From Mantamonas sphyraenae STR306 (lineage: Eukaryota > Protista > CRuMs), in contig JAPMXV010000053.1 of the NCBI GenBank assembly GCA_026936335.1, positions 62,001 through 126,000 on the forward strand: a DNA stretch of 64,000 bases, written 5' to 3'. The notes beneath the pieces were generated by a model. That model worked only from the letters and a program-made list of their open reading frames with translations, had not been told where the DNA came from and did no database searches. A program made the position numbers and the translations under genes. This document shows positions 27,224 to 45,588 of this stretch, in pieces. How positions within the stretch are numbered: the stretch's first letter is position 1; each line of letters opens with the position of its first letter.

Positions 27224-28435
27224 TCACCGCGAAAACAGGTTGAGGCGCATGTTCAACACGAGCGTGGTCGCACCAAACAGAAAATAGAGATACCGGATGG
27301 CCACAGTCGATGTGATGCGCACTGTGGCCACAGTGCACCCAGCCGGTGTCGCTTTGATGTACGAAAGGGCTTGGACCAGCCGTTCAAACCCAGGTTTGGC
27401 TGCCTGCGAGCCAACATAGTCCTGCACCCACTCGACCATCTGTGTGCAGTGCGTAGTCACTCTAGAAAACAGCATCAGCATGCACAGCAGCGTCAAGTTG
27501 TTGGACAGAACATAGAGCAGTTCGACGTTTGTCAGCTCCCCCTGGAACGCTGTGATCACCATGAAAAACGCCAGCAGGAACATGAACGGCAGCGTGAGGT
27601 AGCTCAAGTTCCAGCAAGTGTCGTCCAACAGCCTTTTTGTCGCCCAGTGCAACGTGACAATCAGCGAGGACGTTTCGTCAGCTTCTCGTTCTCTCTGCAG
27701 AACCCCGATCAGCTCCTGGCGCTGTCGGCTCGCAAACTCGTTGGCACACAGCGTGATGAAAATCATCGTGCACAGCGAAGTCTCAAACGCAAGCACAACA
27801 AAGTTGCGGTGGAGAACATTCAGCGCCCAAATCCAGTTTGCAGCCTGGCCAAACTTCTCGTGGTCCTCGATAATCAGCACCAGCAGCTGCGTGTAGTTGC
27901 CCAGCACCAGAAAGGGAATCATCAACACCGCAAACAAGTAAACGCACAACTTGGCTTGGTTCTCAAACGAACGTGAGCTGTGCATCTGCGTGATCATCCC
28001 TGCCAGGTCCACCAGCAGATGTGCACGCACGTATGTGTACGCAAACACATAAATCACAAAGTAGAACACGTGGATGACGATAAACACCGGCTCCGAGTAC
28101 AGTGCACTCACCACACAGCGAGTGAAAAGCACGGAAAACACGACCAAGGTCCACAGCAGCCGCAGAATGCCCAAAGGGCTGCTCATGTCAGGCGGAATCA
28201 ACTCATACCACTGAAACCCGAGCTCTGTCCACGATCGCTCCTTGAATTTGGCCAGTGGCGCCGTCTGGATCGAAAGCTCGGTGTCGAAGCGCTGCCTAGC
28301 ACCTGCAAGGCCGCGCACATCATCACGGGTCACCCAATATCCGCCTACATTGTTCAGCATCAACACAAACTCCAGCCACTTCCCCTTGGAAGCTGGCACA
28401 GAACCCGGTGCCTCCTCAAGCAGGCGTTCCCGCAT
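27224..28435 (-). CDS. 7TM ion-channel / gustatory-receptor-like protein, paralogue 1 (~403 aa)
   Basis: About 7 hydrophobic segments; C-terminus LSYIKATPAGCTVATVRITSTVAIRYLYFLFG; motifs shared with 34582-35856 and 43082-44301. Confidence 0.7.
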   Translation of the reverse strand: MRERLLEEAPGSVPASKGKWLEFVLMLNNVGGYWVTRDDVRGLAGARQRFDTELSIQTAPLAKFKERSWTELGFQWYELIPPDMSSPLGILRLLWTLVVFSVLFTRCVVSALYSEPVFIVIHVFYFVIYVFAYTYVRAHLLVDLAGMITQMHSSRSFENQAKLCVYLFAVLMIPFLVLGNYTQLLVLIIEDHEKFGQAANWIWALNVLHRNFVVLAFETSLCTMIFITLCANEFASRQRQELIGVLQREREADETSSLIVTLHWATKRLLDDTCWNLSYLTLPFMFLLAFFMVITAFQGELTNVELLYVLSNNLTLLCMLMLFSRVTTHCTQMVEWVQDYVGSQAAKPGFERLVQALSYIKATPAGCTVATVRITSTVAIRYLYFLFGATTLVLNMRLNLFSR

Positions 28436-28473
28436 CGACCTGACCAACTTTGGTTTCGTCGGCGCCGTGCGCG

Positions 28474-29004
28474 CTATTCCCTCTTCTCTCTGCCCTGTAC
28501 CAGCCTCAACAGGATCGTCACAAATGCATGTGCAAATACACACACATGCGCCAGAGTCCAAACCATCAGTGCCTGCTGCACGCGAGGGAGAGGATCACGC
28601 AACGACAGCACATACTCTCCCAGAGCCAGACACATGGACCCCAGCGCACACGCTGCCGCTACAAACAGCCTCAACAAGGACGCACTCCACTGTATGGCGT
28701 TGTCTGGAAATGCAATGTGCAACCACGGCCTGTACAACAGAAGCGCCCCGAGCTGCATCACCATGGCTGCAAAATGCATCTTCAACAGCCGTGGAGTGTA
28801 CCATCCGTTTGTGTCTGCTGCGAACTGGGCCATGGCAGATGACCCGTACACAACCCATGCTGCAGCCGCCGGGAGCAGAACAAAGACTCTGATCCATGGC
28901 CGCTTTCCGGCTTGTCTCAAGCTTGCCGCGTGCACAACCAGCACCAGCAGCACAAACAACCCATGCACAGCCTGCCAGTGCTCCGCAGACTCCATGTGTC
29001 GCAT
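28474..29004 (-). CDS. Hypothetical multi-pass membrane protein (~175 aa)
   Basis: Open frame with 4-5 hydrophobic segments; no family recognised. Confidence 0.55.
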   Translation of the reverse strand: MRHMESAEHWQAVHGLFVLLVLVVHAASLRQAGKRPWIRVFVLLPAAAAWVVYGSSAMAQFAADTNGWYTPRLLKMHFAAMVMQLGALLLYRPWLHIAFPDNAIQWSASLLRLFVAAACALGSMCLALGEYVLSLRDPLPRVQQALMVWTLAHVCVFAHAFVTILLRLVQGREKRE

Positions 29005-29060
29005 GAATCCAGGCCTCGCCGCCCTTGCTCGCCCAACCATTTCCTCTTGCGCCGTTTTCG

Positions 29061-29683
29061 ATGCACCTGCTCGCGCACTGGAGCCACTCCGACCGCCGCA
29101 TTCTGTACATAGTCCTTGCGGCTGCAGTGCTCTACTTTGGCAGCGTCACCTCCCTCATCATGGCTGTACGTCCCCTTGCCGGCAAACTCGTTGCGCCTCA
29201 ACGGCATCCTCGCACGCCACAGGCATCGACTCACCCGCCCACACCCCACCCCCCACACCTTCCATCTTCCCCGTACAATGCCCCGTTGACCCTCCCCAGT
29301 TTGGCCCAGACTCGTCCAGGCCACTCGCCAGCGAGGAGGACGCCTCCGACGAAGCAGAACTCTTCTTCCACACACAGGTCAAGCCCGCGCGTAACCACCA
29401 CGGCAGGTTCGAGCAGTCGATGCGCGAAGGAATTGCCCAGTCGTTTGTGGGCGATAGCAGGCTGGATCCCCTCGTGGCCGACCAAGCTGCAGACCCTGGC
29501 GAACTTGCAGCCGCGCCGGCCACAGGGGCATCCCCCGAGGAGCTGCGCAAGGCCCTCAAGCAGGCTTTGGAACGCGCCAAACTGGCCGAGGAGCGTCTAG
29601 CCTTGTGCGAGGCCAGGCAAGCACTGGAAGCGGCGCCTGCAACAGCAACAGCAACAGCCACACTCTCCACAATCGACACATAA
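29061..29683 (+). CDS. Hypothetical single-pass protein with C-terminal coiled coil (structure uncertain; intron and/or frameshift)
   Basis: N-terminal TM segment RRILYIVLAAAVLYFGSVTSLIM in one frame and the coiled coil EELRKALKQALERAKLAEERL in another. Confidence 0.35.
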
Positions 29684-29709
29684 ACTGCTCACGGATGAAT
29701 TCATTGTTG

Positions 29710-31455
29710 TCAGCGCTCTTCACGCCACTCTGCATGCATGCTGTTGCGCACCTGCCGTGCCAGTGCACGCAGCTCATCCGAATGGCGTCCGCTGCGAGCT
29801 ATTTCGTCCATCGCATCCTCCACGTAGTTCCACAGTGCCGAACGCGGTGCAACAAGCTCGAACGCCATGTCCATGCTCTTGAGCAGCTCATACCGCGCCG
29901 CTTCCGGCACACGTGTGTCCAAGCTCAACCGGCTGGCCATGTACAGGACCGCCACACGCAGCCGGTGCGTGTGCTCACGGTTTGTTGGCGAGCGCAGCAC
30001 ATTGCTCAGCACTTTGGCAGCAGCCACTTTGGTTTCCTCGCTTGCACCTGTGTACATGTCTGGCTTGGACCTCGCAAACGGGTTGTCCAACAACCTCGCC
30101 GCCACCTGCAGCACACCAGAGTCTGCCAGACCTTCCAGTACACTGCTAAAGTCAAACTCCCCCACGGCTTCTGGCTGCTCCAATCGCACGCGATCCATCA
30201 GCTCCAGCTCATCCTGGCTCACCCTGGCCAACACTGCCATCCCGTTCCGCATGTCGCCCAGACGCAACAGCACAGCCCCTTGCATGATCTGAACAAATGA
30301 CAGCTGCGGGGACTCCATCTCTTCCAGCTTCTCCACCAGCACATTCAGCCGCTGCAAACCATCCGACAGCTGGCCCACCTGCAACGTAGCCATGGCCAGG
30401 TGCCCTTCGATTTCCACATCCTCCTCCTCCGGATGCAGCCCTCGCAGCACCTCCTCTGCATTTTCTGGCTTGCCTTTGGCCATCCACGTCGCTGCCACAG
30501 AGAACGCTGCCGCCTGCATCCGATCCCACAGCCGCTCGTTTTCGCGGATCCTCTCCCCCAGACTCAGAGTGTAGCGCAGGAAAGCCATCACCTCCTTGTC
30601 AAAGCCTTCTGTCTCGGGTGATTGTAGCACCATCGCTGCCAGCTCCAGCAGGATCACAGCTGCTTGGTGCAGAGGCCGCTCCATGTATGTCGGATCATCC
30701 CGTTCGCGCTGCTCCCTGATCACATGCTCCATCACAAACCGAGCCTCCAGCGCCGCCTCGTCGAGTAGTTCCGAGTCCCCTCTTTGCTCTGCCAGCTGCT
30801 GTGCAAGCCTTGCCAGGTGCACACGCGCCCTCAAAAACTCCTTGTCCGCGGCCACTGCCCTCCGTGCCTCAGCCAGCGCCCGGTCAGGGTCTCTCTTGCG
30901 CAGAGCCACAGAACGCAGCAACGCGGCGTGTTTGTCCCCTGGGTTCAGGTCCTCCATCTTGTTGCACAGGCCCAGCACCATTTCAACCTCTCCTTTCCGC
31001 AGCAAGTTCACCGCCAGCTTCCGCAGCGTCGACAACAACGCTTCGACGTCCTCTTCCTCCTCTTCCTCCTCCTCCCCTTCTCCCCCCTCCTCCCCCTCCT
31101 CTCGTTCTTCCTCCTCCTTCTCCTCTACCCCTTCCTCCTGACCCGTTCGATCCACAGCAAACACAACCCCGTTTTCCCTCACAGTCGCCACGCACACCAA
31201 TCCCAATCCAACGACCACTCCCATACGCTGCTGTATGTCCACTCTGCTTGTCCTTGCCCGCCTTAAACCCGCCTCACTGACCCTCCATGCTTCCCACGCT
31301 GCCGTTGCCCTTTCTTTCCCGCTCGCACGGCTGCCCATGTCACGCCACACACGCACACCGTCCACACCGCCCACACGCAGGCTTGTTTCTCTTGGCTGTC
31401 CTCCTCTCAGCACACGCGCTATGCCCACACGCCCGTGCCGCACCCGTTTAAACAT
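29710..31455 (-). CDS. TPR-containing protein, possibly mitochondrial
   Basis: Arg-rich N-terminus, a short hydrophobic segment, a poly-Glu tract and TPR-like helices (ALAEARRAVAADKEF). Confidence 0.65.
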   Translation of the reverse strand: MFKRVRHGRVGIARVLRGGQPRETSLRVGGVDGVRVWRDMGSRASGKERATAAWEAWRVSEAGLRRARTSRVDIQQRMGVVVGLGLVCVATVRENGVVFAVDRTGQEEGVEEKEEEEREEGEEGGEGEEEEEEEEDVEALLSTLRKLAVNLLRKGEVEMVLGLCNKMEDLNPGDKHAALLRSVALRKRDPDRALAEARRAVAADKEFLRARVHLARLAQQLAEQRGDSELLDEAALEARFVMEHVIREQRERDDPTYMERPLHQAAVILLELAAMVLQSPETEGFDKEVMAFLRYTLSLGERIRENERLWDRMQAAAFSVAATWMAKGKPENAEEVLRGLHPEEEDVEIEGHLAMATLQVGQLSDGLQRLNVLVEKLEEMESPQLSFVQIMQGAVLLRLGDMRNGMAVLARVSQDELELMDRVRLEQPEAVGEFDFSSVLEGLADSGVLQVAARLLDNPFARSKPDMYTGASEETKVAAAKVLSNVLRSPTNREHTHRLRVAVLYMASRLSLDTRVPEAARYELLKSMDMAFELVAPRSALWNYVEDAMDEIARSGRHSDELRALARQVRNSMHAEWREER

Positions 31456-31633
31456 TCTTGCGGACGACTCTTGGACCGCCTGGCGCTCTCTTGCCACACA
31501 CACCAGACCCATCATCACGCTTTCCATCCCTTCCCCACACTCTATGCACCCATCCACTTTTGTGTTGTGCAGTTCCCGACATCAACAATGCGTCTCCGAA
31601 TCCAACGAAATCCGGGAACTTTCCTCCGCAAAA

Positions 31634-34573
31634 ATGTCCAACAGCACCACAAGCGACAATGACATCACTCCCGTCATCCTTGTCCTCGACGACGACGAGG
31701 AGGAAGACATGGACCAAGATCAAATGCAGCTCGACAACCTGTCTGGCCATGGGACCGGCTCCAACGACGAAGACGGTCCGGCCTCCTTGTCAGTTTCCGG
31801 CCACGTTCCCGCCGCACCTCCCCTTCCCCGCCCACAGCCCTGTGTGCACACCCACAGCCTCTCCAGTGCTGACCCCAAGCCCCATTGTGTTGTTCACAAC
31901 TCCCTCACCCATCCAAATCTACAGGGATGACCACGGTTCCTCCCTACTGGCTGTCGACTCGGCTCAGATTGAGGAGCGCAACACGATCAACCAGCTTTTC
32001 AAGGGCGACCGCCTCCTCGTCGACATCGTGCAGAGTGCACGCGACGCCCAGGACCGCCAAGGCCGCGAGCTAGACGACGAGGAGATGCGAGGTGTCAGCC
32101 AGGACCCCAAGGAACCCGTCGAACCCGCCGAGAAGCAAGGCTGGATTGTGGGCGTCTTTCTCCCCTGTACCCAGAACATCCTCGGTGTCATCCTCTTTCT
32201 GCGCATGGCTTGGATTGTTGGACAGGCTGGCATCATCGAAGCCTCTGCAATCGTCCTCGTGTGTGCCTCCACAACCTTCATTACCTCCCTTTCCCTCGCA
32301 GCCATCTCCACCAACGGCAAGGTCGGTGCAGGTGGTGCCTTTTCCCTCCTCACAAAGAGCCTCGGTCCTAGCATTGCTGGCGTTGCCGGCACTCTTCTGA
32401 TGGCTGCCAACAGCTGTGGCTCCGCCATGTACATTCTCGGCGCCGTCGAAACCATCGTCAGCCTCATCCCAGGCCTGGACACAAACACTGGCATCGACCG
32501 CACTCTTCTCAACTCCCTCATTGGCTTGGTTCTCCTTGTCCTCCTCACCTCCATCGTCCTCCTCGGTGTCGGCATCGTTTCCAAAATGGCCAACCCCGCT
32601 CTCGTCGGCGTCTTTGTCACCATCATCTGCATCATGATTGGTCTCTTTATTGGTAACGCTCGTCCTGACGCCTACCCTGGTGTCGAAGCCGTTGGCTCCC
32701 AGTTTGTGGCAAACCTCGGCGCTGCCTATCAGGCCGGCGTCTCCTTCCAGAGCCTTATCGCTCTGTTCTACCCGTCCGTCACGGGTATCCTCGCTGGTTC
32801 CAACCGCAGCGGTGATTTGAAGAAGCCCAGCTTTGCCATTCCGGTGGGCACAGTCGGCGCCATTGGCTTCACCACCTTTATCTACCTCCTGCACGTCTGG
32901 ATGTTTGGCATGGTAGTCGACCGCTCCCTGCTCCTCTCCAAGGATCCATCCATCATTGTGGCCGCTGTCGTCTCGTGGCCCGCCGCCATTGTGGTGCAGA
33001 TTGGCATCCTGCTCAGTTCGCTCGGAGCAGGTCTCCAAACACTGGTCAGCGCCCCGAAGCTGCTCCAGGCCATTGTCTATGCTGATGTCCTGCCCGGCAC
33101 CCACGCCCTCAAGGGAGAGCACAGCCGTCTCAAGTGTGTCGGCGTGGTGGTCCTCATTTCAGCTGGATGCATCATGGCCGGCAACCTCGACGCCATCACT
33201 CCTATCATCACCAACTTCTTCCTCATCACCTACATGTTCATCAATCTGGCTTGTGCTGCCCTGGCCTTTGTCGACGATCCCAGCTGGCGTCCCGCCTTCC
33301 GCTACTTCTCCAAGTGGCTGAGCGCCTTTGGCACCATTGCCATCACCTTTCTCATGTTCTACATCGAGTACCTGTGGGCGTTGGCCTCGTTGTTTGTCGC
33401 AGGCCTACTCTACATGCTCATCCGCAAGCAGCACGTGCAGCAACAGTGGGGTGATGCCCTGACGGCCATGAAAGTTGACGCCGCCTGGACCAGCGTGGCT
33501 CGCCTGCCCAAGGAGATCCACGTGCGCAACTGGCGCCCGCAAATCATGTGCTTTGTGGACCTGAACAACCAGGGCACGCCGTGCAATCCGCTCTTGCTCT
33601 CCTTTGTCATTGCACTCAAAGAGTCGCGCGGATTCAACCTGTTTGTCAATCTGCAGCGAGGCAAGCCCGGCGACCCCGAGCAAATGGCCGGAGCCAAGGA
33701 GATGGAGCACCGCATGGATGCCCTCATTGAAGCCATGGGCATTCCGGGCTTCACACGCTCCGTGGTGTGCGAAAACCCCGTTCATGCAACCCTCACCATC
33801 ATTCAGAGTGCCGGCATGGGCTCCCTTGTGCCCAACACAGTCCTCACCGAGTTTCCCCCATGGATTCGAGCGATCTGGGCAGCCAGCAGTTTGTCACGGC
33901 CATGCAGACGGCGCGAGCCAACGGCAAGACGTTCCTGGCCGCACACATCGACTCGGAATTCCTGATGCCCGAGCGCGACGAAGGTTTCATTGATCTGTGG
34001 TGGATTGTGATGGACGGCGGCTTGCTCATGTTGCTGGGCTGGCTGATGTCCAAGTCGCAGCGATTCAGCAAGAGCAAGCTGCGGCTGTTTCTGATTGCGG
34101 ACGTTGAGGACAACAGCATTGCCATCGAGCGAGACGTCAAGGCAGCGCTGACGGACCTTCGCATCCACGCAGAGGTGACTGTGATCGAGTTGGAAGTGTC
34201 TGACTCGGAGTTTGCCTACAGCCGCACAATGGAGCGGCTGGAACGCACCAGGCGTCTCAAAAGCCTCGGCCTGGAGGACACGACCGATCTCGACCTGCTG
34301 CGCGACCAGGAGTACACGCCGCGCAAGCGCAAGGACAGCACCAATGTGCAGTCTCACGTGACCTCCATGGTCACAGCCACGCGTTGCAACGAGCTCATGC
34401 GCAAAGAAAGCGCAAACTCCTCGGTGGTCTTTGTCAACATCCCGTCGCCGCCAGAAAACAAGCGACAGCATAGCCTGTTTCTGACCTATCTCGAATCGCT
34501 GATCGAGGGGTTGCGCACCGTTGTCATGGTGCGTGGTTCGGGTGTCGAGTTGTTTGACAAGTTTGGCGAATGA
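31634..34573 (+). CDS. SLC12 cation-chloride cotransporter (KCC/CCC-like); 1 intron and an apparent 1-nt deletion at C5 near 33857
   Basis: GVFLPCTQNILGVILFLR, AISTNG, YPSVTGILAGSNRSGDL, WRPAFRY, NWRPQI, IDLWWIVMDGGLLML, VMVRGSGVE. Confidence 0.92.
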
Positions 34574-34581
34574 ACAGAAAC

Positions 34582-35856
34582 TCATCCACTCAACGAGCTG
34601 CCCACTGAGCTTACGCTCCTCAAAAGGAACAGCAGTGCGGCCACGATGGCATAGGCGTAGTTTGCGGCCACGGCGGGTGTGATTGGCACGCTGCCGACAA
34701 AGAACGCAGAACGCGTGCCCAGAAAGACCACGAGTGGTTGGACGTCTCGCAGATCGGTGCCCCGCATGCGACCGGCTGTGTCGTACAATTGACGATTGTA
34801 CTCGTTGCACGCAAAGGTGATGTTGGCCATTGCGCGAAGGGTGACGAGCAGCGTGAGCCCTGCGGTGCCCGTCACGGTAAATGTCAGCGCATTCATGGTG
34901 GGCACAAGCGCACTGGTGACAATGATACCACCCAGCATGGCCAGAATGGTGCCGGACAAGGGAAGCAGCTGGTAGCACGATTGGGTGAGCAGATTGACCA
35001 GGGTGTGGTGCAAAGCGACACCACGGTCGCAAACCTGAGCGCCTGACAGGCCAGCCGAGGTGTCGCCCCCCTCGTCAACGTGGCACACGCGCATTTGCAT
35101 GATTGTCACCCTGTCCTGTACGTCGTCCACCACGTTGTGCATGAGGGTCAGGAAGAACGCCAGGTGGGCAAACCCCAGCGCCATGGACAGGTAGCCAAAA
35201 AGAAACATGACAATCAAACCGACAATCCCCCACACGGGATAGGGTTGTTGGCTCACGTAGATGGCCGAGGGAATGGTGGTAATGAGCCAGAAAAGCGCGC
35301 CAAAGAGCACGCCACGACGTGCAGCGCTCTCCACTCGTGCGTGCACGTCACGCTGCATCATCCCACGCACCACAGTGTGCAGCAAACGCATGGCCAGGGC
35401 ACGGTGCCACAGTCCCTGGCACACAATGAGGATGGTCAGCCCTACGGGCTGCAACATGGCAAACACCCTCTCCAGCAACGAAGGGATAGCGGCCAGGTTC
35501 GACGCTGCCGTGCCCATGTAAAAGATCAACCCGCACCATAGGACAAGGCCCCAGAGGAGTCGCAAGAGGCCTCCCAGCGATGAGATGTCTGGCGAAAGCA
35601 AGTGCCAGACCTCCACGTTGAGGCCCACCTTGTTCAGCGAGCGGTAAATGTGCACCTTGCTTGCTCCGCTGATGCCATCGATGAGCTCTTCGGCCCCGTA
35701 TTCTTCCTCGCTGTCCGCCCGTGAGGCTATCGTGTCCTCAAACGCGGTCAGCTCCTCCGCAGGGATCCACGCTGCGAGCACGCCACCCGTCTGCATCAGT
35801 GTGCGCAGCCATGGCATCGTACGCCTGCGAGGGTTATTCAGCAACGATGTGTGCAT
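34582..35856 (-). CDS. 7TM ion-channel / gustatory-receptor-like protein, paralogue 2 (424 aa)
   Basis: About 7 TM segments; C-terminus LVVFLGTRSAFFVGSVPITPAVAANYAYAIVAALLFLL; shared family motifs. Confidence 0.7.
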   Translation of the reverse strand: MHTSLLNNPRRRTMPWLRTLMQTGGVLAAWIPAEELTAFEDTIASRADSEEEYGAEELIDGISGASKVHIYRSLNKVGLNVEVWHLLSPDISSLGGLLRLLWGLVLWCGLIFYMGTAASNLAAIPSLLERVFAMLQPVGLTILIVCQGLWHRALAMRLLHTVVRGMMQRDVHARVESAARRGVLFGALFWLITTIPSAIYVSQQPYPVWGIVGLIVMFLFGYLSMALGFAHLAFFLTLMHNVVDDVQDRVTIMQMRVCHVDEGGDTSAGLSGAQVCDRGVALHHTLVNLLTQSCYQLLPLSGTILAMLGGIIVTSALVPTMNALTFTVTGTAGLTLLVTLRAMANITFACNEYNRQLYDTAGRMRGTDLRDVQPLVVFLGTRSAFFVGSVPITPAVAANYAYAIVAALLFLLRSVSSVGSSLSG

Positions 35857-35941
35857 TGAGCCAGCAGTGATTTGGGTGGTGTTGGGTCATCATGCGCGCT
35901 CGCCACCACCCGAAACCCAAACTTGACTCCCCAACCGCACA

Positions 35942-38407
35942 ATGTTTGCCAAACTCACTCGTCCAGCAAGCAACATGACGGCTGCCATGTCGGTACGTAT
36001 GGTGTAGTGTGTGTGGCCTGCATTGCAGGTCACAGAGATGTGGCGCGTGCACCACGTGGCGCCTCGGAGGCGGAAAAGGCGGAAGAGAACCGAACTGACA
36101 CACACTCTCCCACAAAGGCCTCGGCCCAGAGCATGGGTGCCGCAGCAGCATCCACAACCTCTGCCTCTGCAGCGGGCATCTTTGGCCGCTCTACGCAGAC
36201 CCGCGACCTTTCCCAGACCAGCAACGTGTCTCGTGGCAGGTAGGTGTGCCGGCCCTGCGAGTTTCCGTCAATTTTCCGCTCTCGAAGGACCCGCTCGCAT
36301 GGCCAAGCTGTAGGGATCTTGTGGGTCAGCGAGCGCGTTGACCTCCTGCTACGGCTGTGTCGTGCCCCAGGGTACATCGGCGTGAAGTGAAAACACGTGT
36401 GGGCTGCAGCGGAGCGTTCAGACAACAGCGAGCATGCGGAAAGTCGTCGGCAGCGGATTTCCAAGCGCCGACCTACGCACAAAGGCAACAAGACTGACAC
36501 GGAACACGCACACATGCACACAACGTTGCACACACAGCAACACCATCATTGGCATCGACCTGGGTACGACCAACTCGTGTGTGGCCGTGATGGAGGGCGC
36601 ACAGCCGCGTGTGATTGAGAACGCGGAAGGCGCACGCACAACCCCGTCGTATGTGGCGTTCACCAAGGACGGCGAACGTCTGGTGGGCCAGCCAGCCAAA
36701 CGTCAGTCGGTGACAAACCCGAAGAACACGTTGTATGCCACCAAGCGTCTGATCGGACGCACCTTTAACGACGAGGCCACGCAGAAGGATCTGGCCTCCC
36801 TGCCCTACGACATCGTGAAAGGACCCAACGGCGACGCGTGGGTCAAGGTGGGCGACAAAGAATACTCGCCCAGCCAGGTGGGTGCCTTTATCCTGGAAAA
36901 GATGCGCGAGACAGCCGAATCGTTCCTGGGCACAAGCATCAACAAGGCGGTGGTGACCGTGCCGGCCTACTTCAACAACAGCCAGAAGCAGGCTACCAAG
37001 GACGCCGGCGAGATTGCAGGCCTCAAGGTGGAGCGCATCATCAACGAGCCGACGGCAGCTGCGCTTGCATACGGCTTTGACAAGCAGAACGCAGGCAACG
37101 TGGTCGTGTATGATCTGGGCGGAGGCACGTTTGATATCTCCATCCTGGAGATCGACGACGGCAGCTTCGAGGTGCTGGCCACCAACGGCGACACGTCGCT
37201 GGGTGGCGAGGACTTTGACACGGTGATCCTGAACGACGTCATCGAGTCGTTCAAGCAACAGGAGGGCATCGATCTGCGCAAGGACCCGCTGGCTCTGCAG
37301 CGCCTGAAGGACGCTGCCGAGAAAGCCAAACTGGAACTGTCGTCGTCCACTCAGACGGAAATCAACCTGCCGTACATCACGGCAGACGCGTCGGGCCCCA
37401 AGCACATCCAGCAGAGCATCACGCGCAGCAAGTTTGAGTCTCTGACCGCAGACCTCATTGCACGCACGCTGGAGCCGTGCCGCATGTGCCTGGAAGATAC
37501 GGGCCTGAGCAAAGGCGACATCAGCGACGTCATCCTTGTCGGTGGCATGACGCGCATGCCCAAGGTCAGCGAAATGGTGCAAGAGTTTTTCGGTCGCCAG
37601 CCGAGCAAGAGCGTGAACCCAGATGAGGCTGTGGCCTGTGGTGCAGCCATCCAGGGCGGCATTCTGATGGGTGATGTGGACGAGGTTGTGCTGCTGGACA
37701 TTACGCAGCTGTCGCTGGGCATTGAGGTGCAGGGCGGTCTGATGGCCAACATGATCGACCGCGGCACCACGCTGCCCACAAAGAAGAGCGAAATCTTCAG
37801 CACGGCGGCAGACAACCAAACGCATGTGCATATCAAGGTGCTTCAGGGTGAGCGCGAGATGGCAGCAGACAACCACTTGCTGGGCGATTTCTTCCTTCGC
37901 GACATCCCGCCCGCGCCGCGTGGTGTGCCGCAGATCGAGGTGTCGTTTGAGATCGATGCCAACAGCATTGTGCAGGTGTCTGCGCGCGACAAGGCCACCA
38001 ACAAGGAGCAGAAGATTGTGGTGGAGGGCTCCGGCGGCCTGTCCGGCGACGACATCGACCGCATGATCAAGGAGGCCGAGGCCAACCGCGAGAAGGACCA
38101 GGAACGACGTGCAGTGGTGGACAAGAAGAACACTCTGGACTCGACCCTGTGGAGCCTGGACAAGCAGCTCAACGACAACAAGGACAAGTTTGGCGACGAT
38201 GAGCTCAGCGAGCTGCGCAAGACCCTGGGCGACCTGCGCGCAAAGGCGGAGAGTGCCGACAACGTGCAGGCTCTGGAGGAAGCCGAGCGTGAGCTGGCCA
38301 CTGCCTCGCAAAACATCTACCAGAAGATGAGTGGCGACAGCAACACCCAGCAGGGCGGCGCTGACGACAACACCGTCGACGCAGAGTACAAGGAGAAGAA
38401 GGAGTAA
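35942..38407 (+). CDS. HSPA9: Mitochondrial HSP70 (DnaK-type), 3 exons
   Basis: Presequence [12 protein letters not shown] spread over 2 exons; [11 protein letters not shown]; GDAWV; [14 protein letters not shown]. Confidence 0.96.
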
Positions 38408-38696
38408 GGACATTGTGTGTGATGATGAAGTCATGAAGTCAACCATGACGATGGGAGGACGTGACGTGACGGGAAAATGGACGACCAAATGCTGCCAAAA
38501 CAACTGCATGCGTTCCACATTGCTGGTGTTGGGTGACCTGCTCGTCATGGCACACCTTCTCTGCGTTCACATTGTGAAGGGGCAGGGGCAGTCGCGCCCT
38601 CCGCCAATCCAACACGTCCCGTCGATTGCCTTGGGTCCCCGTTCCGCCACACACACTGCGTACAGTGCACACAGCCGTACAACGACCACGTAAACG

Positions 38697-41600
38697 ATGG
38701 ATTTCTTCGACGCTGATGAGGACTACATTGATCACGAGCGGTGTTCGGCGTGGGTAGGGTTTGGCCTGATGTCGTGCTGCTGCCTTTTGGCCATCCCGAT
38801 CGGTGTCTTCATCCCCGTGGCATTCTTCGACGCGGAGTATGTGATGATTGGACCTGGCAGTGACTCGTTTTACGTGCTTGCGATGTGGGGCGTGGGTTTG
38901 CCCCTGGGCTGGCTCTTCTCCTGCTGCCTCCCCGTCCCCTTCTTGTTCAAGTGCTGGTGCCCAAGCTACAAGGACGACGATGAAGGAACGATCCTGCGCA
39001 TCACCTGCGTGTTTTGCGAATTGTTTCTCATGCTGATGTGAGTGTTGTCCGTGCTGTTGCCATGCGCTGCACCGTGCTGACATTTCGCAAACACACGCCT
39101 TTCCCGCTCCCAAAAGGACTGCGTTTGCACTGCTCTTTTTCGTGGCCTCCTTCAATTATGTGCAGAGGATCGAGCCCACCAGCGGCCCCGTGTCGGGTGG
39201 GACCACCGCCAAGATTTGGTTGCGCAACGGTTGCATTGACGATGGGGTACGTGGCGCGCCGGCGGTCGCATTGCGCGACTGGAACTACACCGTGTTCCTG
39301 GACGAGCCGAAAGCAAATGTGACAGGAAAGTGCATAACCAACAGCGACGAGACGTTTCCAGACCTTTCCACTTTTCCGTTGCAGTTCTCCATCCCGGCTG
39401 CGCCGTTGCTACGGTCGAAGATCGAGGCTTCCCCCAGTGGCACGCTGCGGCGCACGGTGCAGGCCAACGCAAAGGAGGAAGGCTGGAGTCCCAACCCTGG
39501 CGTGTACTTTGATTACTACATCCAGCCGACGCTTACAGGAGCCACACCGGGTCTGCTGGACAAGCCAAGCCAAATTTTCATCTCGGGCACCAACATGGCC
39601 AAGACGGATGACCAGGCTGTGCTGCTGATCACCTCGACAGCTGGATACCGTGAGACACACAACGTCACGTGGGACGCAGACACCAAACGCTACGGAGCAG
39701 TGATCCGTGCGGGCAACGACCTGACGTCCGCCGGGGCAGACACGCAGCAGGCTGTCGGGTACATTGCTGTGAATGGGGTGGACTTTTCCACTGCAGGCGT
39801 GTCCATCACATACGTGGGCATTGATCGTCTGTCGCCTGTGGAGAAGCAGTCGAATGTGAATGCGACTGTGTTTGTGTACGGACAGAATCTGCTGCGTGCA
39901 CGTGTCAACCCAGACCCAAGGGCTCGCGTGCGCGGCGTTGGATTTGAGTTTGTGTATCCAGCGACGATTGTGAACCAGACGTTGATGACGTTTGTGCTGC
40001 CGGCAAGCAATCGTTTCGGCAGGGTGACGGTCGATGTGTCGCTGGATGGAGGCAACGTGTACACGAACAGCCAGCTGGAACTGCAGATTGTGGGCACCAA
40101 CACAATGACGCCTGGCAGTGGTCCGATGAGCGGCGGGGCGCTGATTACTGTGCCCGGCGGGTGGACAAACAACCCTGGCCTGGCCTGCTCGTTTGGCAAC
40201 ACCACCGTGTCGGCCACGTTTGTCAGCCCGAAGTGATTACGTGTGTGAGCCCTCCCAGCAACAGCTCTGGTCTTGTGAGCGTGAACATCCTGCCGAGTGC
40301 CACGGGCACCCCGATCCCCATGCCCGGCGGCTTCCTGTTCTACCCGGACCCTGTGATCACGCGCATCTCGCCTACGTTGTTGTCGTACGGCACGGCGTCC
40401 CTGTTGACTGTGGAGGCAAACCTGGTCGACACGCAGGAGCACGTTGTGCAATTTCGCACACAAAGCGTGCCCGTGGTGTCGGTGACCTCGCCCCCGTTGG
40501 AAAAGGACGGCGGGATGATCATTCGGGCCCCATCCTACGTTTCGGAGCCCGAAGCACGCATGCCAGCGACCATTGTGTTTGCTGTGGCCCTCAACGGCCA
40601 GCAATTCCAAACCAACGCCACGCTGCAGATGTTCTGCCCCAATGGCACCTGGTCGGACGTCAACAGCCCAAGTCCATGCCTGCAATGCAACCCGGCCTCG
40701 TCGTGTCTGTCGTTTGGCAAGTGTGCCGATGGCTACGAAGGCCGTCTTTGCGGGTTCTGCTCGCGCTCGCCCAGGTACTACAGGCGCGGCAGCTCGTGCA
40801 TCAAGTGCCCCGAAAACCAGGAGGGGTTGACGTTGGGCATTCTGACCGTGTTTGTGATCTTCCTGGCAGGCTTGTTTTACACGTTTGCTGCTGCTGCAAC
40901 ACGGTTGAAGCAGCGTTTGATGTCGGTGTCGTCCATCAGCGTGATCTTTCTGAACTTTGCCCAGATTAGTGCCATTATCGGCGAGATCGATCTGCAGTGG
41001 CCACCGGAGCTGGTGGAGTTTCTGCAACGTTGGATGTCCCTGTTCCTGTTTGATCTCGAGATCGTGTCGCCCGAGTGCAGCGCAGATGTGACGTATGCTG
41101 ACAAGTGGCTGCTGACTGTGCTCCTGCCCCTCATTATTTTGGGCATGTACCTGCTTGTGTACTTTGCAAAGCTGCTGCAGTTTGCGCGCACGAGGAAGCG
41201 GAGCGACTACACGCCAGAGAAGTGGCGGAACGGGGATCCGTTGCCGTGGTGGGCCACGGAGGATCACCTGAAGATTGTGACACACATTCTTCACTCGTTC
41301 TTCCTCTTTCTGTCACTGGCATACATCTGGCTTTCGGAAAAGACCATGTCGGCGTTCGACTGCACACAACAGCCAGACGGTTCCTTCAGCCTGGACGACC
41401 AGCCAGGCGTGCGATGCGACCCAAGCGACCCTGTGTACGCGAGGTTGATTGCGCCTTCGGTGATCTTTGTGATTCTGTGGGTGATCGGTGTGCCCCTCTT
41501 CTTCCTCTTTGTGATTGTGCAGGGCAAGCGGACCGACCTGTTTGACCACACGCCCATGGTGCAGGATGAGAACGACACCAAGGAGCAGCGCTTGTTCCAT

Positions 41601-42958
41601 TCCACGTTTTCGTTTCTCTACTTGGCGTACAAGCCGTCACGGAGCTACCACGAAGTGAGCGTGCTTGTCCGCAAGGTGATTGTGTCTCTGGTTCCTGTGT
41701 TTCTCTCCACACCCGGGTTGGAGCAGGCTCAGGCAAGCATCCTGATGGTGTTTCTGTGGATCAATGCCATCTACGTGTGGCTGACCAATCCCTTTGTGTG
41801 TCATCGTCAGAGCTGCCGCGAAGATCCGGCAAAGTGCACCATCGCGGCCCGGCCACGCGCGTGGATGTCCTTGCTCTGGCAGCGAATGGTCTGATTGCAA
41901 TGTTTGGTCTGATTACGAGTACCCTGGCACCCACAAACGTGGCAGGACGTACGGTGGTGTCGGTGATGGTCATTTTGATCACTTTGGTGGTGGTTGCCGT
42001 GGGTGCGTTTGTGATGTACGTGGACTACAAGCTGAACAAGATCCACGAGTCGCTGGCAAAGGTGCCCATGACCAAATACGAGGCGCAGATGATGCGACTG
42101 CGGTTCAAACCGCACGCGGTGGGGGTGTTGTTCGGCTCTGTGCTGCGGCTCTTCAGCGTGGAAGAGCTGACGCTGGCCTTCTTTGGGCCACGGCGTAAGA
42201 TTGTCAAGATCAAGAACGCCGATGGAGAGGACGACATTGAAGTGACACCGGAGGAGCCGAAGAACGAGAAACCGAGAAAGGAGAAGAAGAAGGATGTGGA
42301 GATGGTGGCGACAAACAGCACAACAGCAGAGTCGACCAACACGCAGCAGCAGACGACGCCTGCCCCAATGGCTGAGTTGGAAAGCAGTACAGCCAAGAGC
42401 AGTTTGTCGTTGGTGAACAGTGTGATGGGCAAGTCGATGGCATTGCTTGTGGGCGTGCCTTCCGATGGAAGCGACCTGGACGTTGACCAGTCGATCCGCG
42501 AGTGGCATGGCCACGACGACAAGGAAAGGGAGGAGGAGGAGAAAGAGAATGCCACAGCGACAACGGAGAATCAAGGTGGAACCGACTCACAGGTTGTGGA
42601 GATCGTGTTGGAGTCGCGTGGGACAGCGAGCCCAGCAATGGCAGGTGCTGGTGTGGGAGGCGACGACGACTCTGCATCGTCCAAGTCTGACGATGAAGTG
42701 ACTGTGAAGACACCCGTGGCATCAACGACCATCCAAAGAACAACATTTCAGCGAGGAAACAGCTCGAAAGCCATGGGATCTCGACCGTCGTTGCGGGTCA
42801 ACGTCAAAGCAGTCACGGAAGAAGACTCTGCGTCTGTATCTAGCGACTCTTCGTCAGATGTGGCCGAACCCCAGCAGGCCCGCCAGGAGCAACCGAAGCC
42901 AGAAGAGGATGCAGCTTCGGTGTCCAGCGACTCAACATCGTCTTCCGCAAGCGAATGA
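38697..42958 (+). CDS. Large membrane protein: N-terminal TM segments + IPT/TIG repeats + Cys-rich linker + multi-TM domain; 1 intron and 2 apparent 1-nt deletions (~40227, ~41847)
   Basis: Intron ~39038-39116 joins the TM exon to IEPTSGPVSGGT. TIG motifs (PGSGPMSGG, CSFG, ITCVSPP, VSLDGG); CADGYEGRLCGFC; NFAQISAI...WP; FSFLYLAYKP...HEVSVLVRK. Confidence 0.75.

Positions 42959-42986
<28 letters not shown>
42959..42986. repeat. (AC)n microsatellite
   Basis: Directly visible. Confidence 0.95.
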
Positions 42987-42989
<3 letters not shown>

Positions 42990-43081
42990 CGATTGTCCAC
43001 CACATTCCCATGCAGGACGAGTCTGCGTGAATGTTCCTGTGTGAGCAGAGCGTGCTCTGGCGCAGGAAAGAGAACTTCGAG

Positions 43082-44301
43082 ATGCAGGCCCCGTTGCTCT
43101 CGCCGACGCAGACCGAGAGGGACTACTCGATGCCCTGGACACGTGCATTGGTCAGACAGCAAGGAATGTTTGGGATCTGGGTGCTTGGGGATGACGTGGT
43201 TGGGATGGAAAAGGCTGCGGTGGAGGCTGAAGACATCGAACTCTCCGGGGGTCCCCCACCTGTGCTCTACCAACCTCGCTCGCTGATTGAGACCCAATTC
43301 CTCAAATCATCCCTCATTGCCTTGATTCCACAGGATGTGATGAGCGGGATGGGAGCACTTCGGGCGCTCTGGTCGCTCCTGATCCTCACCGGTGTGGTCG
43401 GCGGCTATCTCGTCCCTGTTGGCCCGCTGTCCTTTTTCCCCACGAGATCCCTGTATGCATTGGTGTACTTGGGCATGGCTATAGTTGTGCGCCTCCATCT
43501 GGTCTCGTTCATTGTGTCTGCGAGCAGAAGTCGTCTTGCAACAGCGAAGCAGATCGACACGGCCGCGCGGACAGCAATGCTGGTGGGTACACTTGCCATC
43601 CTGCTCTTTGTGGTCGGTTCTATGGTTCTCATCGCCCATGACGACGCCTTTTTGGCTCTGGGAGGACTGGAGCAGGCAGTGGGGGTCTGGTCGACTGCTG
43701 TGAACTTTGCGCTGCTCGGCGACGCTCTGGAGGTGCTTGTGTTCACCACGACGATCATGCGCTCGCAAACACACACTCATTTGCTGGAAATGCTCCAGCT
43801 ACGCAAAGTCTACCGTGAGGAAGGCGTGGACGCTGAGAAACTGTTGCACTCGATCTACGCCATGTTTCGCCTCCTGGACGAGCAATCGTACTCGTTGCGC
43901 TTTGTCAACTTTTCCCTGTTTGCGTTGCTGTCCTATGTGTTTGTTGGGACGGCAGTGATCCTGTTTACGAATCGTGGAGATCCACAGCTTCGAGTGTTTG
44001 GCTGGATTGCGTATCTGGGCGAGATCGCCGTCTTTCTCGCCCTCCTCACGAACATGAGCATAATCAACACGTATGCAGCGGACGCACACGTCGTTCTGTC
44101 CGACGTGTTTGCGTACGGCGGCGAACAGACAAAGTCGCTCGCCCCAGTCCTCACGTTTCTCAACCGCAACCGTCCCGGTCTCCGCGTCGCTGGGGTCCTC
44201 GTCACTCGCGAGCTCGTCGTCGTGTGGTGTACCTGTTCATTGTCACGAGTGGCAGTGCCGCGTCGGCCAGCTTTCTGATCGATCATGGTGTGTTCAAGTG
44301 A
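43082..44301 (+). CDS. 7TM ion-channel / gustatory-receptor-like protein, paralogue 3 (~406 aa; apparent 1-nt deletion near 44220)
   Basis: About 7 TM segments; C-terminus VLTFLNRNRPGLRVAGVLVTRELV-RVVYLFIVTSG... once the frame is restored; shared family motifs. Confidence 0.72.
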
Positions 44302-44541
44302 CAAGTGAATGACGCCCCGATAATTTCCTGATCGCCACACCCTTCTTCCCCATTCCAAGAACCCAGTCTCATCCACACACCAAAGTGGATCACGACTCAA
44401 GCGCAACCACACAAACTCGCACGTTTCTCGTTTTCCTCGGGTCCCCCTGGATCGTGCACCCATCTTGTGTGTGACCCGCATCAGCCCAGCCGATCTACAC
44501 CTTCGCCACGCAATTGTCCATTCATTGCGGAGCGTTGCCTC

Positions 44542-45588
44542 ATGCTGATCCCACCGTTATACCACGTGTCGCTGAGCACGGGCTCGTTTTTCAGCCTGAC
44601 CAGCCGCGTGTTCTGGATGCTCATTGTGCCGGGGGTGGTCATGGTCCACATTCTGTTCCTGTTTACGCTCATTACGCCGTTTCCGGCGTGGCGTAAGAAG
44701 CAGCTGCAGGCACTGGCGCCTGCGCTGTGGTATGCCTTTGCAGCCCTGCTGGCTCTCGGCGCAATTGCCCTGTGGGCTCTGTACATAACCCCCATCCTGC
44801 GCCTGCTCACTGTGCTCACTCTCAACCAAGATGATTATTTCACTGCCAATGTCCTGGGCGTCTCCACGGCCGTCGCCCACATCGCGATTCCCGCCCTCCT
44901 CTTTCTCAGCCAGCCCTCCGTCCTCACACAAGCGGGCTACACCTGCCTCTTGGTCGACGTGCAAAGCCTCGTCCTACGCGCATGGTTCCGCTACGGACCC
45001 AATCATGACCTCGATGCCCTCGTACGCGCCCTCCTGTGCTACGTGGGACTCTCCCTCGCACTCGTTCCCATCCTCGTCTGGCGCCTCCTCATATACCGCA
45101 GCCACCGCGGCCACCTTGCCCAGTACAAGGAAGCCGTCTTGGCATATTTGTCTCTGCATCGCCAGCTGCAGCACAAGCCCCACAGCAAGGTGCTGGCGGA
45201 CCAGTGCCTTCAGCTCGCCGAGGCCATCGACGCCCAATTTGTCAGTGTGACTCCTCTGCGCCTGCTCACCCAATACGACTCCCTCGGTGCACAGATACAC
45301 TACCACACCACAGTTGCCTCCCCTTCCTCCTCCTCCTCCTCTTCTTCTTCATCATCCTCCTCCTCCTCCTCCTCCTCCGCCACCGTATCATCGACGCTTC
45401 CACCTCCCACCCCTCGCAACGGCAGAGATCCCACAAAGACCGCCTCCATACGCTCTCCCGAGCATTCCAAACGCCTTGAAGACCTTCATGACAAGCGTTC
45501 CCGTGCTCTCGCCCAGCTGCTTGACTTTGCCGAGGTGTCCGACCTTGAACTCGACGAACTGGAGCGAGAAGTCCAACGTGACGAGTAG
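44542..45588 (+). CDS. Hypothetical multi-pass membrane protein with poly-Ser tract
   Basis: Long ORF, ~5 hydrophobic segments, helical C-terminus. Confidence 0.6.
   Translation: MLIPPLYHVSLSTGSFFSLTSRVFWMLIVPGVVMVHILFLFTLITPFPAWRKKQLQALAPALWYAFAALLALGAIALWALYITPILRLLTVLTLNQDDYFTANVLGVSTAVAHIAIPALLFLSQPSVLTQAGYTCLLVDVQSLVLRAWFRYGPNHDLDALVRALLCYVGLSLALVPILVWRLLIYRSHRGHLAQYKEAVLAYLSLHRQLQHKPHSKVLADQCLQLAEAIDAQFVSVTPLRLLTQYDSLGAQIHYHTTVASPSSSSSSSSSSSSSSSSSSATVSSTLPPPTPRNGRDPTKTASIRSPEHSKRLEDLHDKRSRALAQLLDFAEVSDLELDELEREVQRDE

Follow-up and report, generated by a model that had tools for sequence, protein, structure and literature searches.

A lineage-restricted family of seven-transmembrane proteins with an insect odorant/gustatory receptor-like predicted fold in the flagellate Mantamonas sphyraenae

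Three paralogous genes

A 64-kb stretch of the genome of Mantamonas sphyraenae, referred to here as the window, contains three open reading frames (ORFs) of interest, P1, P2 and P3. A first-pass annotation, made from the sequence alone, had proposed that they are intronless genes of a previously undescribed family of chemoreceptors, related to the odorant receptors (ORs) as well as the gustatory receptors (GRs) of insects. These receptors, together with the gustatory receptor-like proteins (GRLs) and the plant DUF3537 proteins, belong to the seven-transmembrane ion channels (7TMICs). All three ORFs are present, with lengths that fall within the 350-500 amino acids (aa) expected of 7TMICs, and they belong to a lineage-restricted and rapidly evolving family that numbers at least 34 loci in a 25-Mb genome. 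The genes and their most characteristic segments, in which TM denotes a transmembrane segment, are as follows.

27224..28435, minus strand: P1, intronless, 403 aa from its ATG, seven-TM protein
27224..27382, minus strand: C-terminal signature of P1 (a TM7a helix and TM7b joined by a short hairpin loop), the block with the strongest conservation in the family
28145..28201, minus strand: pre-TM1 signature of P1, the D..G.LR.LW block, from the four-paralogue alignment
34582..35856, minus strand: P2, intronless, 424 aa
34582..34746, minus strand: C-terminal TM7a-hairpin-TM7b signature of P2
35545-35601, minus strand: pre-TM1 signature of P2, counterpart of the P1 block
43082..44301, plus strand: P3, intronless, 405 aa with one missing base allowed for
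44135..44301, plus strand: C-terminal TM7a-hairpin-TM7b signature of P3, broken by an assembly frameshift at 44219/44220
43322-43378, plus strand: pre-TM1 signature of P3, counterpart of the P1 block

Pairwise BLASTP comparisons gave E-values of 8e-14 for P1/P3 (291 aligned residues), 2e-9 for P2/P3 (332 aligned) and 7e-7 for P1/P2, with identities of 21-26% over up to 332 residues, and the three are therefore real, old paralogues, each pair showing the significant similarity on which the proposal depended. The short strings quoted in the annotation as shared motifs were all located at colinear positions (15/15), and in the pre-TM1 signature the columns D83, G89, L91, R92, L94, W95 and L97 are invariant in the alignment of four paralogues. 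The genes surrounding P1-P3 are unrelated to them, as had been described, and encode RabGAP-TBC, an SLC12 cotransporter, Hsp70 and a TIG/TRP-like membrane protein. The open frame of P1 extends upstream to a TTG 42 codons before the ATG; the ATG start is backed by an N-terminal M-x-x-x-L-L found family-wide, and P3 opens with Met-Gln-Ala-Pro-Leu-Leu. Directly upstream of P1, a 188-aa ORF on the same strand (28474-29040, minus) contains several hydrophobic segments and has no Pfam match.

Family size and divergence in the genome

The genome (25,061,354 bases in 78 contigs, approximately 59% GC) was examined by iterated profile searches, in which new members were added in each round and loci were counted at an E-value of 0.01 or less. 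The first profile, built from P1, P2 and P3, retrieved one additional copy only (P4, on contig C16), and the later rounds gave 6, 9, 16, about 27 and 38 matches, the last of which merge to 34 distinct loci, in agreement with the large repertoire anticipated from the three window genes. Every new ORF that was read ends in a common C-terminal signature consisting of a short helix, a Gly-hydrophobic-basic-hydrophobic hairpin, Ile/Val-Thr and a terminal hydrophobic helix, which excludes profile drift. The family-wide alignment, topology and conservation figures given here refer to 28 sequences, the last six new loci lying outside this inspected set. Most members have open frames of 380-460 aa, and an N-terminal M-x-x-x-L-[LI] occurs in 10-11 of 27 members, with both major clades represented.

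Identity across the 34-locus family is as low as 11-24%, and a single relative, of metagenomic origin, was found outside this genome, which bears out the description of the family as a lineage-specific and highly diverged expansion. Conservation, expressed as pairwise identity, reaches 0.29 in the hairpin and 0.21 in TM7b and lies at 0.13-0.18 elsewhere; Himmel et al. describe this pattern for 7TMICs as well. On the maximum-likelihood tree P1, P2 and P3 group together with modest support (SH-aLRT 83) and terminal branches measure 1.2-2.0 substitutions per site, from which an old local duplication is deduced. Clusters are also found at other loci: a tandem trio occupies C75:33446-37716, its middle copy being a pseudogene with seven in-frame stops (six TGA, one TAG), and four family matches lie within 27 kb at C42:76894-103730.

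Predicted topology and structure

Hydropathy analysis gives seven hydrophobic segments in each protein, and likewise in the family-average profile. The mean number of Lys and Arg residues (K+R) is 22.0 on the N-terminal side, comprising the N-terminus and three loops, versus 1.5 on the opposite side, and under the positive-inside rule this bias indicates a cytoplasmic N-terminus, the reverse of a G-protein-coupled receptor (GPCR). The N-terminus and the long loops are accordingly predicted to be intracellular, with mean lengths of about 27, 45 and 63 aa for intracellular loops IL1, IL2 and IL3 and about 4, 4 and 6 aa for extracellular loops EL1, EL2 and EL3. An internal N-terminus and long intracellular loops are two of the features by which Benton et al. 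identified protist GRLs (PMC7746228), and both are thus predicted here.

Structural comparison leads to the same class of proteins. An AF2 model of P1 has a predicted local distance difference test score (pLDDT) of 49, and its top 21 Foldseek matches in the PDB are all insect ORs or GRs. The model of P4, made from five sequences, is better than that of P1 (pLDDT 59, predicted template modelling score 0.51), and its top 22 PDB matches are all GRs or ORs, including BmGr9 with an E-value of 1.3e-4 and TM-scores of 0.49/0.53 over 340 columns, the best unrelated match scoring 0.2 or less. In the ESM Atlas, the same model matched arthropod and nematode clusters (7tm_7, Trehalose_recp, DUF267) with TM-scores of 0.59 and 0.57, the best unrelated match reaching 0.36. 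Both models predate the 28-sequence alignment. The Foldseek comparison of these models thus points to a 7TMIC fold and to neither a GPCR nor a transporter.

Long TM4-6 helices and a split TM7, both of which had been suggested in the first-pass annotation, are seen in the P1 and P4 models, each of which has seven long helices in addition to TM7a. According to DSSP, the helices of TM4, TM5 and TM6 extend over 45-52 residues, and TM6 is followed by a 13-residue helix (H350-362), a two-strand hairpin (EE--EE) and a final helix (H376-404; H376-400 in P1), an order of elements that therefore corresponds to the TM7a/TM7b arrangement of the superfamily. At the N-terminus, where the re-entrant helix (S0/TM0) expected of 7TMICs would lie, an amphipathic W...W segment is conserved, and residues 1-88 have a pLDDT below 50 and are unaligned to the OR/GR chains. 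For tetramer formation, a complex prediction for four copies of P1 residues 195-403, in which the alignment was not used, gave scores of 0.31 and 0.22 with the mark set at 0.32, and these count neither for nor against a tetramer.

Relatives outside the genome

Outside this genome, an exhaustive hidden Markov model (HMM) search with a 4-sequence profile against 1.84 billion representative proteins returned a single match, P0001, with an E-value of 1.6e-4:

JGI metagenome 3300064047, 8343-base contig L005, 3897-5408: P0001, 503 aa, with the C-terminal half and the TM7 signature in common with the family

Word-indexed homologue searches with P3, P0001 and a 5-sequence profile found nothing besides P0001, the exact P1-P3 sequences are absent from a 15-billion-protein collection, and P0001 had no relatives in metagenome contig scans. 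The gene neighbouring P0001 on its contig has no close homologue in the M. sphyraenae genome.

No Pfam family is matched by P1, P2, P3, P4 or P0001, and sequence searches of the PDB gave noise apart from one weak match to OR10; the 28-sequence profile is colinear with AaegOR10 at a sub-threshold E-value of 0.019. Two family members have sub-threshold Pfam matches, to 7tm_7 (E 0.011) and 7tm_6 (E 0.04), both colinear. When these two HMMs were run over the six-frame translated genome, each gave one match, in two different family members, and chance is an unlikely source of these sole matches because the family constitutes a very small fraction of the genome. The Trehalose_recp HMM had no match anywhere in the genome. 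In a language-model search, the nearest named clusters of P1 were DUF3537, DUF267 and 7tm_7, and the neighbours of P2 were DUF3537 (0.94) and 7tm_7 clusters (0.92).

Assignment to the superfamily and rival explanations

The superfamily itself is known, and the family is best described as a new branch of it, orphan in sequence, whose main point of interest is the number of its copies. With a probability of roughly 65%, its proteins belong to the 7TMIC superfamily and probably work as OR/GR-type channels. The solved structures of ORs and GRs suggest, by analogy, that within each subunit the outer half of the helix bundle would contain a ligand pocket, that the cytoplasmic extensions of TM4-6 together with TM7a would join four subunits, and that a central cation pore would have TM7b as its lining. 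Two observations qualify this assignment. The GR TM7 motif, (T/S)Y-h-h-h-h-h-(Q/K/E)(F/L/M), which has been called diagnostic but not definitive (PMC7746228), is complete in no family member, the shared part being the Tyr alone in the P1-P4 subfamily and S-Y in one distant member; moreover, sequence similarity to known 7TMICs is sub-threshold throughout and nowhere significant on its own. An unrelated lineage-specific seven-helix family, whose likeness to ORs and GRs would be convergence or an artefact of low-confidence models, is nevertheless improbable: 7TMIC families alone emerge from the models made separately for two paralogues, from both structure libraries, from both aligners and from the language-model search, two different Pfam 7TMIC HMMs each have their sole genome match inside the family, and the topology, loop lengths and conservation pattern are all 7TMIC-like. 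Still further down the scale stands a GPCR-type receptor with an external N-terminus, or a transporter, which has the count of seven TM segments in its favour and was rejected on topology and fold matches, as the charge bias places the N-terminus inside, neither class appears among the top Foldseek or VIA matches of the P4 model, and the weak sequence matches to NorA and BmrA, with E-values no lower than 0.07, span one or two helices.

The rival that deserves most attention accepts the 7TMIC fold and assigns the proteins a membrane function other than chemoreception, for instance as an endomembrane or housekeeping channel, so that ligand diversity would not be the source of the expansion. In its favour, DUF3537, PHTF and protist GRLs have no known function (PMC7746228; PMC9998090), and the N-terminal M-x-x-x-L-[LI] motif could be a sorting signal. 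A housekeeping channel, however, is usually single-copy and conserved, whereas 34 highly diverged loci, among them tandem clusters and a pseudogene with several stops, resemble the birth-and-death repertoire of receptors, and this explanation is judged unlikely. For the OR/GR-type channel assignment, a chemosensory role of the family is plausible by analogy, as its size, extreme divergence, tandem clusters and pseudogene fit the sensory repertoire of a gliding bacterivorous flagellate. The strongest version of this idea, in which the flagellate would possess a true chemosensory system of at least 30 rapidly diversifying ligand-gated 7TMIC channels, the equivalent in a unicellular organism of the insects' repertoire for smell and taste, is tentative and on present evidence rather unlikely.

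Comparison with known channels

7TMICs have been reported from Thecamonas, Vitrella, Protostelium, chytrids and green algae (PMC7746228), from trypanosomes and as PHTFs (PMC9998090), and by the thousands in unicellular eukaryotes, bacteria and archaea (bioRxiv 10.1101/2023.08.30.555482). The claim of an undescribed family is therefore partly overstated: the sequence family and its size in this lineage are new, whereas the occurrence of 7TMICs in unicellular eukaryotes had already been published. No published link between Mantamonas and 7TMICs was found in the literature searched.

The family resembles the unicellular GRLs and Euk7TMICs of Thecamonas, Vitrella, Protostelium and chytrids (Benton 2020, Himmel 2023), which are likewise proteins of 350-500 aa with seven TM segments and an internal N-terminus, have intracellular loops that exceed the extracellular ones in length and a TM7 motif of low conservation, and are encoded by intronless genes. 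This comparison is by description and not direct, no sequence-level link having been detected, and the 1-6 copies per species of the 2020 protist survey (PMC7746228) contrast with the 34 loci of this genome. With insect GRs (BmGr9, Gr43a and Gr64a; 7tm_7 and Trehalose_recp), identity is 10-14% and there is no significant sequence match; the insect proteins have the TM7 motif TY-h5-QF, which is absent in the Mantamonas family, and for this family channel activity, ligands and a tetramer would be expected by analogy. Matches to insect ORs and Orco (7tm_6) are weaker than those to GRs, and the family gives no sign of a co-receptor arrangement.

Plant DUF3537 (PF12056) belongs to the same superfamily, and among named language-model clusters it is the one nearest to P1 and P2 (0.94-0.95), but its HMM has no match in the family and IL3 is longer in the plant proteins (PMC7746228). 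The sole genome match of this HMM is weak (E 0.023) and falls outside the family, at C1:366218-366520 on the plus strand, in an open frame of 282 aa; it might represent another gene of 7TMIC type, distinct from those described here. In the literature, the core 7TMIC fold is also ascribed to PHTF-like (Class-B) and kinetoplastid 7TMICs; IL1 is very long in PHTFs, compared with about 26-27 aa in this family, and kinetoplastid GRL1 carries WD40 repeats, in contrast to the absence of extra domains here (bioRxiv 10.1101/2023.08.30.555482).

What 7TMICs do outside insects is an open question in the field, and a culturable organism with dozens of copies, each intronless, highly diverged and about 400 aa long, offers a practical place to test whether the superfamily originally served ligand-gated sensing. 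If the chemosensory interpretation is true, the repertoire would be far larger than those of the 2020 survey. As a member of CRuMs, M. sphyraenae would extend the known distribution of 7TMICs to one more supergroup, placed near the base of Amorphea, and the family, which has no Pfam match and one relative among 1.84 billion representatives, illustrates how much of the superfamily escapes sequence searches.

End of P3, neighbouring genes and assembly variation

As assembled, P3 reaches a stop at 44278 after 398 aa. Contigs from public runs of the same organism (X1, X2 and X3, compared as Logan contigs) contain an extra base at this point (X1 and X3: T after 44219; X2: C after 44220), and the shifted frame over 44221-44301 encodes a hydrophobic TM7b-like helix with the conserved Tyr of the subfamily and ends with TGA. 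The originally annotated end at 44301 is therefore right, and the frameshift belongs to the assembly. The window is contained in four runs of a single study. The published study of this organism lists four runs, three of DNA and one of RNA (PMC10492846), and X3, though labelled as DNA by a guess, may by elimination be the RNA run, which would hint at expression of P3. The depth of X3 contigs is uneven over adjacent genes (about 33 over P3, 3-5 over its neighbour), and contig depth is unsuited to ranking genes.

Upstream of P3, three overlapping ORFs with IPT/TIG and TRP-like matches cover 39142-42958 on the plus strand (39142-40236, 40161-41894 and 41756-42958), and the X1 and X2 contigs insert T after 40227 and A after 41839; these ORFs are probably one long gene split by two single-base assembly gaps, and residual indels are thus general to this assembly. 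The SLC12 cotransporter (31458-34573, plus strand) also falls into two overlapping ORFs, AA_permease at 31458-33965 and the SLC12 C-terminal domain at 33767-34573, and either a short intron or a further frameshift of the assembly could account for the split; 8 bp separate the SLC12 stop from that of P2 on the opposite strand. At 41332-41534, contigs of X1, X2 and X3 bridge a 201-base segment with one of equal length and diverged sequence, in long records that otherwise lie elsewhere, and this alternative segment looks like a paralogous or allelic variant. Over 38600-44550, approximately 30 single-base sites differ between the X1 and X2 contigs and the window, about 11 of them within the 1.2 kb of P3, in keeping with the biallelic variation that has been reported in M. 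sphyraenae.

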